A DNA stretch of 64,000 nt from Octopus bimaculoides. Taxonomy: Eukaryota. Below the pieces are notes generated by a model. It did no database searches and was not told the origin of the DNA. It was given only the letters and a program-made list of their open reading frames with translations. Of the stretch, positions 5,205-30,706 are shown piece by piece. Location: NCBI RefSeq assembly GCF_001194135.2, contig NC_069010.1, positions 9,735,102 to 9,799,101 on the forward strand, given 5' to 3'. How positions within the stretch are numbered: the first letter of the stretch is position 1; every line of letters starts with the position of its first letter. The translations under genes were made by a program, and so were the position numbers.

Positions 5205-5233
5205 TATAAATACAAGCCGTCTCCGGTTCAGTC
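5205..5233 (+). promoter_or_regulatory. TATA box and initiator of the His-repeat/defensin-like gene
   Basis: TATAAATA at 5205-5212 and TCAGTC (Inr-like) at 5228-5233. CCACCATG start context at 5301-5308. Confidence 0.6.
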
Positions 5234-5305: not shown

Positions 5306-7364
5306 ATGAAAGCATTCTTCCAGGCTATATTCCTGCTGACGGCGCTGTCGGTCAGCCTCCATGCATTCCAGTCTGAACTCGAACAGGTTGGTTATGCCTC
5401 TGCTCTTAGTGAGAAATATGATGGGGACTACTACAAGTACAGTAAGTTGGTCCGAAGAGACGCAGGCCACCCCAGTGAAAGATCTCTTGTGAAACGCTCG
5501 TATCATCACACCTATGCTCCTGGTGACCGTCACACCTATGGCCCAGGAAGACATACTTATGGACCCTATGACCGTCACACCTATGGCCCAGGAAGACATA
5601 CTTATGGACCCCATGGTCATCACACCTATGGCCCACNNNNNNNNNNNNNNNNNNNNNNNNNNNNNNNNNNNNNNNNNNNNNNNNNNNNNNNNNACCCCAT
5701 GGTCATCACACCTATGGCCCAGGAAGACATACTTATGGACCCCATGGTCATCACACCTATGGCCCAGGAAGACATACTTATGGACCCCATGGTCATCACA
5801 CCTATGGCCCACATCACACTAAGCCAGGTACTTCACTTACTTTTTTATAATATTTATCTTTTTATGGGGGTGGTGTCCCCTGGTGGTCAGTTGTCATTGG
5901 GGAGACAATCTCTTCTAGATTAAGTTAAGTCGGGCAACATTGCTGTGGATGAAACCTTCCCTGGTTCAATGCAGAAGGAAATGGCTGCAGCAACCCACCA
6001 TGGGGTACAGAGAGCACGGTGGGGCCCACTGCATCCATCTCCCTCCCCAGTCGTCTTGACTTGGTCTTGCTTCTCGATTGAAGATGGTCACAGACTGGGA
6101 AGCTATGAGTTGTTTAGTGTAGTCGGGCTTTCCTGTCTATTTATGTGACGACTGGATGCAGTGAACTCTACGAGAGAAACCTTCACAACTTAACAGAGGC
6201 AAAGGTGAGGGGCCAGTAATGCCCTGTGGGGCGCAGAGAAGAAAAGATGAAGCAAGTAAGGTCGTCCACTGCAACCATCTCCATCCCTGGTCATTCTGAC
6301 CTGGTCACTACACAAGTCATTAGACATCATTAGTCATCTGATGGTCAAATGTGCAGGCAAGTTAGGGCAAAGATTTCAACGAAGCACCGTGTCAAGTATT
6401 CCTCTTCAGGAGAAGGCTTGGCTGTGTGGCTGAGAAGTCTGCTTCCTGAGCACATGGTTCTGGGTTCAGTCCCACTATGGAGCATCTTGGGAAAGTATCT
6501 TCTATAATCACTCCAAGCCAACAAAAGCGTTGGTGTGGGTTTGGAAGATGGAAACTAAAAGAAGCCTGTCTGATACATGTATTTATACACACACATACAC
6601 ACATTATTCTTATACAAGAACATTGGTGACAGTGACTCCGAAGTTAGATAAACTACCAGCAGATTGCAATGCATTGAAGTTAATATTTTTCTTGGATGGA
6701 ATGGTGATTAGATTTTTGGGGTGGTTTGTAACAAAGTGGTGTTTTCAAGAAATTTCTTTTGATTATATTTGGAATTATGTTATTGTTTCGAATTTATTTC
6801 CATATATAGAACTCGGTAAACAGGTGGGTCTATTCTGGTGCGATTCTAAGGTTAAGTCGACACAGGACATTATATATATATATATATCTTTATAAGAATT
6901 TATCAAGTAGTTAGCATGAAAAAACCTCATAAGGAAAAAAACCATCATTTTTTTCCATAAATATATATAATTTAATTTATATAAGGGCCCTCTAAGTGTG
7001 AGGCATTATTGTATAGTAATGCCCTTATATAAATTAAATTATATATATATATGCATATATATATCTATAAACATAGACACACACACACACGTGTGCACAG
7101 GTATATAGAATGAGTTTTAGAGAATACAGGTTTTTGAGAACATAATTGACCCAGTATAAATGGTTGGTTATTTTAAAGTGTCTTTTCCACACCTCATTAA
7201 TTCTGAGTGGACACTTTAGAGGTTGGGGTGGGGACATAAGGGTCTATAGAAAGCAAAAGAAAAGAGTGCTTATATGATACACTTGGGAGAGTTGACGTCA
7301 CATGGGTGCTCAACCTTGCAGACATGAAGGAAAAATATATGCCTCTATGCATACGTAAGTATGT

Positions 7365-7397
<33 letters not shown>

Positions 7398-7943
7398 NNN
7401 NNNNNNNNNNNNNNNNNNNNNNNNNNNNNNNNNNNNNNNNNNNNNNNNNNNNNNNNNNNNNNNNNNNNNNNNNNNNNNNNNNNNNNNNNNNNNNNNNNNN
7501 NNNNNNNNNNNNNNNNNNNNNNNNNNNNNNNNNNNNNNNNNNNNNNNNNNNNNNNNNNNNNNNNNNNNNNNNNNNNNNNNNNNNNNNNNNNNNNNNNNNN
7601 NNNNNNNNNNNNNNNNNNNNNNNNNNNNNNNNNNNNNNNNNNNNNNNNNNNNNNNNNNNNNNNNNNNNNNNNNNNNNNNNNNNNNNNNNNNNNNNNNNNN
7701 NNNNNNNNNNNNNNNNNNNNNNNNNNNNNNNNNNNNNNNNNNNNNNNNNNNNNNNNNNNNNNNNNNNNNNNNNNNNNNNNNNNNNNNNNNNNNNNNNNNN
7801 NNNNNNNNNNNNNNNNNNNNNNNNNNNNNNNNNNNNNNNNNNNNNNNNNNNNNNNNNNNNNNNNNNNNNNNNNNNNNNNNNNNNNNNNNNNNNNNNNNNN
7901 NNNNNNNNNNNNNNNNNNNNNNNNNGTATATGTATATGTATAT

Positions 7944-8016
<73 letters not shown>

Positions 8017-8268
8017 CTTGTGGTCCACAGAAAACAATACAAAGTTGAATAAAGAAAGAGTAAAGGAAGAATATCCAAACACAATAAATACACCTCCATT
8101 CAAAATTCCACATGATCCCTAATTGGTGTTTTTTTCCCTTCTATTGCAGAGCCCCGATGTGAAAAAATTAGTTTTTTGAATACATACTGTTTGTCCGTCT
8201 GTCCACCTGGCCACCTCCAGATTTCTAACATTTCTGGCTGTCCAAGGGGTACCATTTGCTGCACATAA
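5306..8268 (+). CDS. Secreted precursor: signal peptide + propeptide (RR, KR) + HTYGP tandem repeat + 6-Cys beta-defensin-like domain (gene A)
   Basis: Exon 1 is 5306-5827 (57-N gap at 5637-5693 inside the repeat): MKAFFQAIFLLTALSVSLHA...LVRR...LVKR-SYHHTYAPGDRHTYGPGR...HTYGPHHTKP, ending in phase-1 donor CCAG|GTACTT. Exon 2 follows the pyrimidine tract TTTTTTCCCTTCTATTGCAG| and spans 8150-8269: (E)PRCEKISFLNTYCLSVCPPGHLQISNISGCPRGTICCT*, stop at 8266-8268. The defensin label rests on Cys pattern only. Confidence 0.85.
5503..5817 (+). repeat. Coding minisatellite, 45-bp unit encoding HTYGPGRHTYGPHGH
   Basis: Unit cacacctatggcccaggaagacatacttatggaccccatggtcat is repeated on both sides of the 5637-5693 gap. 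At least 11 complete HTY(G/A)P pentamers are visible. Confidence 0.9.
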
Positions 8269-8949
8269 GGTACGTATTACAATATCTTCATTTATCTCTG
8301 ACATCTTCTACTCATTGGACTCGTGGTCATGCTGGAGCAGCATGTTGAAAGGGTTTGGTTGAACAAATCGACCCCAAGACAGTTTTTTTTTTTTTTTTAG
8401 AGAATTTGGTATTTACTCTATTGATCTCTCTTGCTGAACCACTATGTTACAGGGTCATAAACAAACCAATGCCAATTATCAAGCCCTGGTGGGACACAGA
8501 CACAACCACAAAAACACATACTTATATACACATACATCACCGTATCAAGTAGACTATTAAATATTGTTATACATCGCTGGTCACAATGCGATTCCTTGCA
8601 TTTTAGTATTTTTCAAATGATGCCGACCTACTGCTCTAGGCAGACGGGCCTGCATTTTCTACTGAACTCAGCACCGGTCCTCCACAGCTCAAGGTTGCCC
8701 CTTGGTGCTATGCAGTGGTACTGAACTAGGAACCATGGGATTGCAAAGTGAGCTTTTTAACCACATGGCCATGCTTGCGTCTATATACATGTGTGTATAT
8801 ATATATTGCGGGGGGGGGGGGGAGAATTTGGATAGAAAAGTGTGAAGGACAGACAGATACACTGAAAGATGTAAATATGTTCAAACTTGTTTCGATTTCA
8901 TTTAATTAAAATTAATTTAATTAATGTCCATTATTATTTTTCTTTGCAG

Positions 8950-26175: not shown

Positions 26176-27288
26176 CCCACCTCTCCCCAACATCATTATC
26201 AGTGCCTCCTCCTTGCCATGTGTTCAATTCGCAGGTGTAGTAATATCGTACAACAAAGAAACAATCAGTGGGAGATGGGGTGGGGGGTGCTATATATTAT
26301 GGTTTATTTGTTTGTTTTTAATTATTATTATCTTTCAGAACTTTCTGTTTTGTCATGATGTGTGTAGGAACGTTATGCTCTCACCTCTACTATGGAAGCA
26401 AAGCAGTGACATAATTGCAGCCTTTACCGTAACGGAACACATTGGGGAGTTAAGCTTTAAACCGAACTTCTGTTGTTGAATGTTTAATCTTACATATTAC
26501 ATCATGTGAAAACTATCACGCTGCTTTTTACGTTGGACACCTATTATTTTAAGGAAATTCATTCCCCCCAAAATACCAGGTATTGAACCAGTGTTTCCTT
26601 AGAAGAAACCATTCCTTCATGAGGTTAAGATATCTTCTAATTAAACTTATATAAATAGATACATACACACACACACATATATATATAGATATATACGATG
26701 GGCTTCTTTCAGTTTCCATCTACCAAATCCACTCACAAGGCTTTGGTCGGCCCAGAGCTATAGTAGAAGACACTTACCCAAGGTGCCATGCAGTGGGACT
26801 GAACCTGGAACCATGTGGTTGGTAAGCAAGCTACTTACCACACAGCCACTCCTGTATATATGTGTGTGTGTGTGTNNNNNNNNNNNNNNNNNNNNNNNNN
26901 NNNNNNNNNNNNNNNNNNNNNNNNNNNNNNNNNNNNNNNNNNNNNNNNNNNNNNNNNNNNNNNNNNNNNNNNNNNNNNNNNNNNNNNNNNNNNNNNNNNN
27001 NNNNNNNNNNNNNNNNNNNNNNNNNNNNNNNNNNNNNNNNNNNNNNNNNNNNNNNNNNNNNNNNNNNNNNNNNNNNNNNNNNNNNNNNNNNNNNNNNNNN
27101 NNNNNNNNNNNNNNNNNNNNNNNNNNNNNNNNNNNNNNNNNNNNNNNNNNNNNNNNNNNNNNNNNNNNNNNNNNNNNNNNNNNNNNNNNNNNNNNNNNNN
27201 NNNNNNNNNNNNNNNNNNNNNNNNNNNNNNNNNNNNNNNNNNNNNNNNNNNNNNNNNNNNNNNNNNNNNNNNNNNNNNNNNNNNNNNA

Positions 27289-27911
27289 ATCTCCTGCAAT
27301 TCTTCTGGACGGTCTCCTTGTTTAAGTCTGTGAATGCAGCCATAACCCTTGCCTTCAGTTCATCTTTGATGTTGCAAGGAGTTTTGTTGGTCTCTTGCTC
27401 AACTGCGCCCCACACATAATAATGAAGCGGGTTGTAATTTGGGGAGTTAAGCTGCTAGATGTTAGGGGTGATGTGGTTGCAGAAATTGTCTGACGACCAT
27501 CACTGGGTTCTCCCTTTTGATCCTGGGCAGCACTACTTCCTCCAGGCACTTGATGTAGGCCTCTGTGTTGAGTCTGAGGCCATGTGGGAAGATGAATGGA
27601 GGCATAACGTCGCCATCACTAGGGATCACTCCAAACACCATGGATGTTTGATTTTTATCACTTTTTGTACATGTCCTCAGGCTGACACTCAAACACTCTG
27701 AAATGTTTCTATTGGAGCTTCTGGCACGAATGCCAAGCAGCAGAGCATGTCGTTTCCAACTTTCTGGCAGAGTGAATCGCGTCTGGTGCTGTTTTTCTCA
27801 CAGATGGTGCCCAACTGACCCTACTATACTGTGTTGTCAACAAAATCAAAAACAAATAATGTGCAAGCGCAAAATTAAAACTATAAGATGACGACAATTT
27901 ACTCATCGCAC

Positions 27912-28855: not shown

Positions 28856-30706
28856 ATACAATATATGATAATATGCATATATATGTACATGTATGTACAT
28901 ACCTTCATCTACATGTACATATAGATACATAACTGGGTACATGACGTTGAAAAAAAACATAGATAAAATGTTAAACAAAGTACAAAAAACAAGCAGGCTA
29001 CATAGAGAACATTTCTTTCATCAGCTGCCACCATTAAAACACTGGCATTTCGAAGAGTTAGGGCAGGACGCATCGTTAAAGTGGCTCTTCCTATAAGCAC
29101 AAATTAAAATTTTTTTCGTGGAGGATAGTGGCGGATGGAAAACAAAACAGGAAAACGAAACGGTGAAATAAGCAAACAAGAAGGCTGTACAGCCAGACAT
29201 GGAGAAGTGTGTGTATATTGAACGCTGTGAAGCACAAACAAGAAAGGCGAAGAATTGTGTCCGGAGTTTAGGTGGTCAGAGACCGAAAAGAAATATATAT
29301 ATATATATATATAAGTTCAAAAAAACAATAACAAAAAAACAACAAAGTGAGGACGTGATACGGATAGTGTTATGTGCGTATGTATGTATGTATGTATGTG
29401 TGTATGTATGTGTATTCCTATACATATGATTTATAGGCAATTTTGACCTGAGAAAAGTTTGAACTCTGAACATAAAAATGAACAAAATACCGCAGAGTAG
29501 TTTGCCCGGCTTGCTAACCATTCTGCCATCTCGCTGCCCAAAAAATTATCATCTGTAACGAGGCATAATAGCTGGAGGTGTTTAGAGCGTCTGTCTTACA
29601 ATAATGAGGTAGTGAGTTCGATTTCCGGATCGGTCTGTGTGTTGTATTCTGAGCAAGACACTTTATTCCACATTGTTCCAGTTCACTCAGCTGTAGAAAG
29701 GAGTTGTCACGTCTCTGATGCCAAACTGTATCGGCCCCTTTGCCTTTCCCTTGGATAACATCAGTGGTGTGGAGAAGCGAGGCTGGTATGCATGGGCGAC
29801 TGCTGGTCTTCCATAAAAACAACCTTCGGTTGTCACCAGTGAGGTGACATTCCGCCCGGACTTATACCCCAGGAGGGAACCTCTTAGGTGCACCCATGGC
29901 CATCGATAGACGCAAGTCAACCATAGAGTCAACCCTGAAGATATTGTTGATACTCACATTCAGCTGAGTAAATTGAAACGGTATGAAATTGGGTGCCTTG
30001 CTCAAGGATAGTTTGCACTAAAACTCAAACCCATGATCACAAATCTATACCAAAACCACTGTGCCAAGCATTTTACCTCATTGTTTGAAATATTTTTTTC
30101 TGATACAAAGAATGCAATATTTTCCCCATTAACACAGTATGGAATATTTTTCTGGCGTATGTACTTGATATTAATATTTTTCTGACATACATTGTATGTA
30201 ATAATTTTCTGACTTGCATCACACACAATATTTTTGGCACATTTCTTTCGACAGGTTTCTCTGGCACTGATATTCAGCCTTTTTCGTCTTACTGTCCAGA
30301 TGGCTACAAGTTCATAATGAAATGTTCATTTGCTAAAATATATACAGTGAATCTGTGTTATAAGCTACCACCAACGACAACATCGAAGCCTTTACCAACG
30401 ACAACATCGAAGCCTTTACCATCAACTCAGTCAAGCACACTCCTGTCCACTCTAAGCACTCTTCAATCTACTCTACCAACCACCACGCCAACAACAGAAC
30501 CTACTACCACCCAACCTACTACCACCCAACCTACTACCACCCAACCTACTACCACCCAACCTACAACCACAGTCCCAACAACAACTCCTCAGCCAAGAGG
30601 TAAATATCCCAAACTTTGTGTTTGATAATTTTATTCTAATGAACAAACATCTAATGTAAACGTTTTTCTTTGTCTCTTCACGTCTCTTTCTCACTTCCAC
30701 GAACGA

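Follow-up and report, generated by a model that had tools for sequence, protein, structure and literature searches.

A histidine/tyrosine repeat encoded ahead of a defensin-like six-cysteine domain in a gene of Octopus bimaculoides

In big defensin genes, the signal peptide, the propeptide and the N-domain are encoded on one exon and the cysteine domain on the next, and an intron of phase 1 lies where the cysteine region begins, at its 5' end (PMC7203481, PMC3182236); the last two residues of the prodomain are KR or RR (PMC7203481). These proteins are thought to be ancestral to the vertebrate beta-defensins, and it is debated whether their N-domain was lost or replaced by intronisation, deletion or exon shuffling (PMC7203481). 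Two further kinds of protein are of interest here. Some natural antimicrobial peptides (histatin, hepcidin, piscidin) begin with an X-X-His sequence, the amino-terminal Cu/Ni-binding (ATCUN) motif (PMC7701195, PMC7232333), and the GHGxY repeats of squid beak undergo phase separation by histidine deprotonation and tyrosine stacking, for which at least four tandem copies are needed (PMC6884462). In this paper we describe a gene, designated gene A, in a 64,000-nucleotide stretch of the Octopus bimaculoides genome (NCBI RefSeq assembly GCF_001194135.2, contig NC_069010.1, positions 9,735,102 to 9,799,101 of the forward strand), referred to as the window and numbered from its first letter. Gene A encodes a His/Tyr repeat followed by a six-cysteine domain, and a paralogue, gene B, lies 12 kb away on the opposite strand. 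A His/Tyr repeat ahead of a cysteine exon of the big-defensin type is a new pairing in the literature that was searched, and the same literature holds no prior description of gene A or of paralogue B.

The window is eukaryotic in character, AT-rich and interspersed with many microsatellites and assembly gaps. Within it, gene A is a genuine O. bimaculoides gene with two coding exons on the forward strand (5306-5827 and 8150-8268), which are separated by a phase-1 intron (5828..8149). The spliced protein has a single match, the O. bimaculoides entry XP_014779245.1 of 169 amino acids, and this RefSeq model makes the same join between exon 1 and exon 2. Exon 1 ends with CAC ACT AAG CCA G/GT, which places the donor CCAG/GT at 5827/5828. 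The intron runs from this GT (5828-5829) to an acceptor that consists of a strong polypyrimidine tract and CAG at 8147-8149 (AG at 8148-8149), and splicing restores the Glu codon of ...KP-E-PRC from the G at 5827 and the AG at 8150-8151. The initial annotation of this stretch, which was made from the sequence alone, had joined the repeat exon to the cysteine exon, and the matching phase, the fitting splice sites and the RefSeq model all bear this out. An assembly gap in the intron (7398-7925, between (TA)n runs) touches no coding sequence. We considered a hidden exon in this gap and found it unnecessary: the phases match without it, the intron of paralogue B, a gene of the same design, is gap-free, and RefSeq joins the two exons directly.

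On the 5' side, the Kozak context of the start codon is good (ACCATGA). A TATAAATA box (5205..5212, forward strand), which precedes the start codon by about 95 nt, is a putative core promoter of gene A. On the 3' side, a consensus-like splice donor (TAAG/GTACGT, 8269..8275, forward strand) directly follows the stop codon. Paralogue B has CTCAAG/GTAAAT 24 nt after its stop (about 20338-20345, reverse strand) and a candidate acceptor near 19507. Judging from these sites, A and B probably each have a conserved intron in the 3' untranslated region and a non-coding third exon. Both genes are already publicly annotated. Gene A is uncharacterised, and its RefSeq name, "histidine-rich glycoprotein-like", is misleading, a compositional artefact.

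Translation of gene A yields, in this order, a signal peptide, an acidic and Tyr-rich propeptide, the repeat beginning at SYH-(HTYGP)n and the six-cysteine domain, with all the elements that the initial annotation had listed. The signal peptide MKAFFQAIFLLTALSVSLHA is encoded at 5306..5365, and the hydrophobic core of this signal-like N-terminus has a grand average of hydropathicity (GRAVY) of 1.43. It is followed by a propeptide of 44 residues (5366..5497), 5 of them acidic and 5 Tyr, with two dibasic sites at which the chain may be cleaved. The first, LVRR, comprises residues 48-51 (5447-5458). The second, LVKR (5486-5497), is the end of the sequence RSLVKR (residues 59-64, 5480-5497) with Arg at P6 and Lys-Arg at P2-P1, and basic residues at P1, P2 and P6 are a fit to the rules of proprotein convertases. 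Directly after it comes SYHH (5498-5509), whose first three residues, Ser65-Tyr66-His67 (5498..5506), would form an ATCUN-type N-terminus if the chain were cut after LVKR; His stands at position 3 and residue 2 is not Pro. All of these features lie on the forward strand.

The His/Tyr/Gly/Pro tandem repeat extends from 5507 to 5827 (forward strand), including an assembly gap, and ends with HHTKP. It consists of HTY(G/A)P pentamers separated by the spacers GDR, GR, YDR, GR, HGH and so on; the initial annotation had named only GR and HGH, both of which are present, but the first spacers include GDR and YDR. The higher-order unit is 45 nt (15 amino acids) long and reads HTYGP-GR-HTYGP-HGH. Tandem Repeats Finder reports a period of 45, with 94% matches to the left of the gap and 100% to the right (2.6 copies). 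GDR and YDR are found in the older 5' units, and the 3' units are 100% identical as DNA; amplification is therefore recent. His makes up 24% of the repeat, Gly 21%, Pro 14%, Tyr 14%, Thr 13% and Arg 7%, and this N-module is hydrophilic (GRAVY -1.79). The charge of the gene A product is located in the repeat and not in the cysteine domain: for the 90 visible repeat residues, we calculated +4 at pH 8 and +22 at pH 5.5, a roughly five-fold change.

The pentamer HTYGP is written in two alternating codings, CACACCTATGGCCCA and CATACTTATGGACCC, which differ at four positions. All four are third codon positions and all four changes are synonymous, and the chance of all of them falling on third positions is 5/1365, or about 0.004. 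The HTYGP frame is under selection as coding sequence, because the differences between its two codings are synonymous only and because it is the sole frame that splices into the cysteine domain. The two other frames of the repeat were rejected: they either run into a stop or read exon 2 as SPDVKKLVF and then a stop, and neither reaches the cysteine domain.

The gap inside the repeat is represented by 57 N (5637..5693), and the frame is broken as written. One spare base is left on each side of it, a C (5636) on the left and an A (5694) on the right; it follows that 3n+1 nt have to be missing, and 57 N do not preserve the frame. Both flanks are in one 45-nt register, and the frame is regained if the repeat is continued in register by 16+45k nt. 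The initial annotation had counted at least 11 pentamers. As written, the window does contain 11 complete ones (6 to the left of the gap and 5 to the right), but this count assumes that the flanking contigs do not overlap, and the RefSeq model has 8. Maximal overlap of the flanks gives 10 pentamers, and in-register fills give 12 or 14. The last base to the left of the gap (C) fits the terminal ...GGCCCAC(ATCAC), encoding ...GPH(HTKP), and not ...GGCCCAG(GAAGA), encoding ...GPG(R). Judging from this one base, the array may have collapsed, or the copy number may differ between the two chromosome copies of the animal. This assembly does not settle how many copies there are, and the repeat length in it is unreliable.

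Exon 2 (8150..8268, forward strand) encodes the six-cysteine domain (E)PRCEKISFLNTYCLSVCPPGHLQISNISGCPRGTICCT and ends with TAA (8266-8268). The cysteine array is C-x9-C-x3-C-x13-C-x5-CC in both A and B. When all six frames of the 64 kb were scanned with a loose six-cysteine pattern, the corresponding exons of these two genes were the only two places that matched. For comparison, loop ranges were measured on 39 big-defensin C-domains taken from Table S1 of PMC7203481: the first loop has 4-14 residues, the second always 3, the third 12-14 (mostly 13) and the fourth 3-7, followed by CC. The loops of A and B (9/3/13/5) are within these ranges, and loops 2 and 3 are the least variable in the family. 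The gene structure agrees as well. In gene A the exon partition of big defensins, the dibasic prodomain and the phase-1 intron are all present, and the split codon (G/AG) lies three codons before the first cysteine. Since about one intron in three is of phase 1, a shared intron phase alone is weak evidence. Paralogue B has no dibasic site, and neither gene encodes the hydrophobic globular N-domain (beta1-alpha1-alpha2-beta2) of canonical big defensins.

The trans-defensin fold of the beta-defensin type is an antiparallel sheet of three strands with the disulphides C1-C5, C2-C4 and C3-C6. AlphaFold models the domain with three strands and moderate confidence, at a predicted local distance difference test (pLDDT) score of 77 for A and 66-83 for B. 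Among the 12 PDB structures that Foldseek matched to A were 4 beta-defensins, 6 alpha-defensins, helianthamide and a sea-anemone peptide. The top match of both A and B, though not a significant one, was the crocodile beta-defensin CpoBD13, with a template modelling (TM) score of about 0.5. The canonical big defensin that Gerdol et al. (PMC7203481) reported for octopus is another gene, absent from the window. The domain had been called defensin-like in the initial annotation. The cysteine spacing, the exon layout, the intron phase and the defensins among the nearest structures, none of them a significant match, speak for this label; the results against it are that there is no sequence similarity beyond the cysteines and that paralogue B was the only homologue found among 1.84 billion proteins. 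We consider it reasonable to say that gene A is built, and works, like a non-canonical big defensin; support for this is moderate and does not extend to membership by descent.

Paralogue B has the same layout with two coding exons, both on the reverse strand. Exon 1 (21315..21450, ATG at 21450) encodes MKVEGLALLFLLSVSYHLVVSERKASTSNPLDSVTWQDNVRITLP(E) and ends with CCAG/GT in phase 1. Exon 2 (20369..20490) encodes (E)PKCGHTTFLKTQCYQICPAGHLIVSGLKGCQKGWHCCTS and the stop; the split codon is G/AA. The protein is identical to the UniProt entry A0A0L8GP88_OCTBM, an "uncharacterized protein" of 85 amino acids. It lacks the repeat and has a hydrophilic stretch of 25 residues instead, which AlphaFold predicts to be disordered (pLDDT below 50), and its signal peptide is modelled as a helix. 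The two cysteine domains can be aligned without a gap, cysteine to cysteine for all six, at 47-48% identity, and the two proteins retrieve each other at E values of about 1e-8 to 1e-10. Their signal peptides also align (LLxxLSVSxH...SE), and exon 1 ends alike in both (T-x-P). In the stretch that these anchors enclose, A has some 105 or more additional residues. Since the aligned signal peptide and exon-1 end flank the insertion, it was within exon 1 that the propeptide and the repeat were gained or lost, which the initial annotation had supposed from the absence of the module in B. A DNA comparison of the two loci detected no similarity at the exon level, and only microsatellites and copies of an element that resembles a short interspersed nuclear element (SINE) could be aligned. 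The duplication is therefore old. A long (ATG/CAT)n microsatellite (20030-20170) is found about 200 nt 3' of the stop of paralogue B; the poly-Met, poly-Ile and poly-His open reading frames (ORFs) that it produces in several frames are artefacts.

Our preferred reading, which we hold tentatively and put a little short of an even chance, is that the gene A product is a secreted two-module protein, likely an effector of host defence or surface protection. Proprotein convertases would cut after LVKR and thereby expose the Ser-Tyr-His end. Because no cleavage site separates the cysteine domain from the repeat (...HHTKPEPRC), the mature protein would stay one chain, SYH-(repeat)-HHTKPE-cysteine domain, and the free 'EPRC-' peptide that the initial annotation had listed among the products to look for is not predicted. 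The repeat would be disordered and bear nearly all of the charge. It would bind Cu, Ni or Zn via the X-X-His end and the HGHH clusters, and it may self-associate by His/Tyr contacts in the manner of the squid beak GHGxY repeats. In doing so it would stand in for the N-domain of canonical big defensins, which is hydrophobic and self-assembling, and the disulphide-knotted domain would supply target binding. A more specific version of this proposal is that an octopus gene of the big-defensin type lost the hydrophobic N-domain, which forms nanonets that trap bacteria, and grew within the same exon a His/Tyr repeat like those from which cephalopods build coacervating beak proteins. In the resulting defensin-like product, pH or Cu/Zn would act as a switch for self-assembly, for deposition on surfaces or for the capture of metal. 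This version we regard as doubtful, and hold it with much less conviction than the general one.

Several results weigh against the preferred reading. An exhaustive HMMER search of 1.84 billion representative proteins with a profile of A and B retrieved A and B as the only homologues. Four repeat proteins in the same result were rejected as spurious, as they consisted of multiple short partial matches without the cysteine array. No Pfam defensin family was found for A or B at E<=10, nor any other Pfam family, and a PDB sequence search returned chance matches only and no defensin. A hidden Markov model (HMM) of the big-defensin family, built within this analysis, gives A a score of -1.8 bits and B a score of 5.2 bits, and 546 of 1000 cysteine-preserving shuffles score as well in the case of A (65 of 1000 for B). 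The Foldseek matches are non-significant, with E values of 0.39 or worse. The AlphaFold models were made from a two-sequence alignment, and 3 of the 5 models for A are below a pLDDT of 56; they may merely echo the cysteine pattern, in which case the fold evidence would not be independent of the spacing evidence. The cysteine domain of A is moreover not cationic (isoelectric point (pI) 7.9, net charge about 0 at pH 8), and most defensins are. That of B has a pI of 8.7 and a net charge of +1.8. Finally, the cleavage after LVKR is assumed, and so is the ATCUN end. With regard to the initial annotation, which had derived the Ser-Tyr-His end from cleavage after KR, the position of SYH directly behind LVKR and the type of end, which is a known one, stand, and the cut is presumed.

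Other searches were negative too. Full-length A, B, and the alignment of the two cysteine domains served as queries against 5.8 billion proteins in a word-indexed search, which retrieved only the two O. bimaculoides entries, and by exact look-up in assemblies, including Logan, the two proteins are not on record. Metagenome scans for the cysteine domain and for the degenerate coding pattern of HTYGPHGHHTYGP gave nothing.

The most serious rival is that gene A encodes a structural, adhesive or coacervating matrix protein, in which the repeat is the working part and the cysteine knot is an anchoring or multimerising end-domain. This is unlikely in our estimation, but it has to be reckoned with. 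The repeat would then act through pH-triggered phase separation, with His-metal or His/Tyr(3,4-dihydroxyphenylalanine, DOPA) cross-linking, in a secreted material, for which beak, sucker lining, radula, egg-case cement and mucus are candidates. With its high content of His, Gly, Pro and Tyr and its G-(H/R)-H-T-Y units, the repeat resembles the squid GHGxY pentapeptides, although the exact GHGxY motif is absent from it and the likeness to beak proteins was judged from composition and not from an alignment. The perfect identity of the 45-nt units and a copy number that may vary between chromosome copies are typical of structural repeat proteins, and the neutral cysteine domain of A also suits such a role. 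On the other hand, two dibasic convertase sites in a propeptide are more usual in the precursors of peptide effectors than in matrix proteins, and B keeps the cysteine domain without the repeat, which points to this domain as the conserved functional core.

We think it less probable that the cysteine domain is an unrelated, lineage-specific six-cysteine fold with convergent spacing, and that the repeat is a neutral low-complexity expansion. Possible roles of the domain would then include those of a peptide in reproductive signalling, a salivary toxin and a protease or channel ligand. The domain shows no residue-level similarity to big defensins beyond the cysteines, the family is an orphan with two members only, the structural matches are non-significant, and the 3' repeat units do not differ from one another as DNA, the mark of a recent expansion, all as this explanation would have it. 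It has to accept, however, four independent coincidences with big defensins: loop 2 of 3 and loop 3 of 13 residues, the terminal CC, the position of the phase-1 intron, and the dibasic end of the prodomain. A purely neutral repeat is also at odds with the finding that the two pentamer codings differ by synonymous changes only.

The remaining explanation is a polyprotein of the neuropeptide or hormone kind, from which cleavage at each Arg would set free HTYGP-NH2, HTYGPHGHHTYGP-NH2 and a Cys-rich peptide. A polyprotein with amidated products had been one of the models of the initial annotation, and it is very improbable: the classical dibasic sites of the propeptide do show a precursor built for convertase processing, Gly-Arg does follow every a-type pentamer, and the pentamer is kept at the peptide level despite synonymous change, but Gly-Arg follows alternate pentamers only, the oldest units carry GDR and YDR and would give no amide, dibasic flanks are absent (the amplified units have His at P8 and no basic residue at P4 or P6), the sole basic residue ahead of the cysteine domain is the Arg that adjoins the first cysteine and permits no clean release, none of the papers in the literature library that was searched contains the string HTYGP, and a related precursor was found in none of the databases searched.

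The two genes are of interest for the origin of beta-defensins. If the homology to big defensins is true, neighbouring octopus genes carry the same cysteine exon behind two very different exon-1 contents, almost nothing in B and a propeptide with a His/Tyr repeat in A. If the swap of the N-module is true as well, the locus is a natural example of it on a conserved cysteine exon, and would represent a new route from big defensins to beta-defensin-like peptides. A defensin-like domain that bears a module rich in His would represent a new design, dependent on metal and pH.

Some further features of the locus and its surroundings are recorded here. The long third loop of the A cysteine domain contains an N-glycosylation sequon, Asn-Ile-Ser (8227-8235, forward strand), and there is none at this place in B. 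The SINE-like element is about 150 nt long and is present in 12 copies of 69-80% identity, without a tRNA or Rfam match. One copy lies in the intron of gene A (6416-6575) and one in that of paralogue B (21131-21241); others are found, for example, at 14780-14931, 26701-26848 and 49189-49340. Rfam and tRNA scans of the window as a whole were likewise negative. The ORF fragments at 15885-16493, 16557-16832 and 26831-27415 (reverse strand), which we take to resemble the C-termini of mariner/Tc1-type transposases, adjoin assembly gaps and share the motif ...WGA(L/V)E(R/Q)ETNK.PC..K.ELKAR(I/V)MAAFT(N/D)LNKE.VQK; a Pfam search with one piece of these transposase-like ORFs gave no match. An ORF at 30317-30625 (forward strand) encodes mucin-like, Thr/Pro-rich tandem repeats (PTTTSKPL twice, TTQPTTT four times) with no Pfam match; it is possibly an exon from a further gene for a secreted protein, or else just a low-complexity ORF. 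Downstream of A and B lies a large gene for a TRPC-type cation channel, with exons at 47524-48186 (forward strand; Pfam TRP_2, E 2.2e-22, and ankyrin repeats) and further ORF pieces up to about 62800 on the same strand.

Among known systems, vertebrate histidine-rich glycoprotein, after which gene A was named, has repeats of the GHHPH type, and it has only the His/Gly/Pro-rich composition in common with A, which has no cystatin-like domains according to Pfam and differs in size (169 or more residues) and architecture. A parallel in general design, and a known theme in invertebrates, is provided by chimeric antimicrobial peptides (AMPs) in which a low-complexity repeat is joined to a Cys-rich domain, such as the penaeidins, type II crustins, hyastatin and arasin. 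Microplusin and hebraein are His-rich peptides with six cysteines, and the His-rich ends of microplusin chelate copper. As in A, a Pro-, Gly- or His-rich N-module of low complexity precedes a disulphide-stabilised C-domain in these peptides, including microplusin, but the chemistry of their repeats and their cysteine folds (WAP, penaeidin, microplusin) are different, and there is no sequence relationship.

Hepcidin-25 and histatin 5 begin with X-X-His (PMC7232333, PMC7701195), for which A possibly has SYH, by way of the putative KR cleavage. Histatin contains a His/Tyr-rich cationic stretch that the repeat of A, which is probably disordered, resembles, and hepcidin carries an ATCUN end and a disulphide-rich domain on one chain, as proposed here for A. 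In hepcidin, however, the ATCUN sequence sits directly on the cysteine hairpin, whereas in A it would be separated from the cysteine domain by 60-100 repeat residues, and neither peptide has a sequence relationship to A.

With the big defensins, including the non-canonical ones of Ruditapes and Dreissena (PMC7203481, PMC3182236), A shares the organisation as a prepro-protein, the dibasic end of the prodomain and the placement of N-module and cysteine domain on separate exons. Bivalves with canonical and non-canonical big defensins also have long and short paralogues side by side, as is the case for A and B. The signature residues of the family (GWCR, VCGxYxCC) are absent here, and in place of the hydrophobic N-domain, A has the hydrophilic His/Tyr repeat and B its short hydrophilic stretch. 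The neutral cysteine domain of A is a further difference.

The repeat itself can be compared with the squid histidine-rich beak proteins HBP-1 and HBP-2 (PMC6884462), which are likewise secreted cephalopod proteins with tandem five-residue repeats of Gly, His and Tyr (and Pro). A His charge that can be switched by pH and regularly spaced Tyr residues, on which coacervation depends, are found in both. The motif of A is HTYGP, or G(H,R)HTY, with GHHTY and GRHTY as the strings nearest to the GHGxY of the HBPs. Its repeat contains Thr and Arg and lacks the hydrophobic units of the GAGFA type. Unlike the HBPs, the repeat of A is fused to a Cys-rich domain and has a convertase-type propeptide ahead of it.

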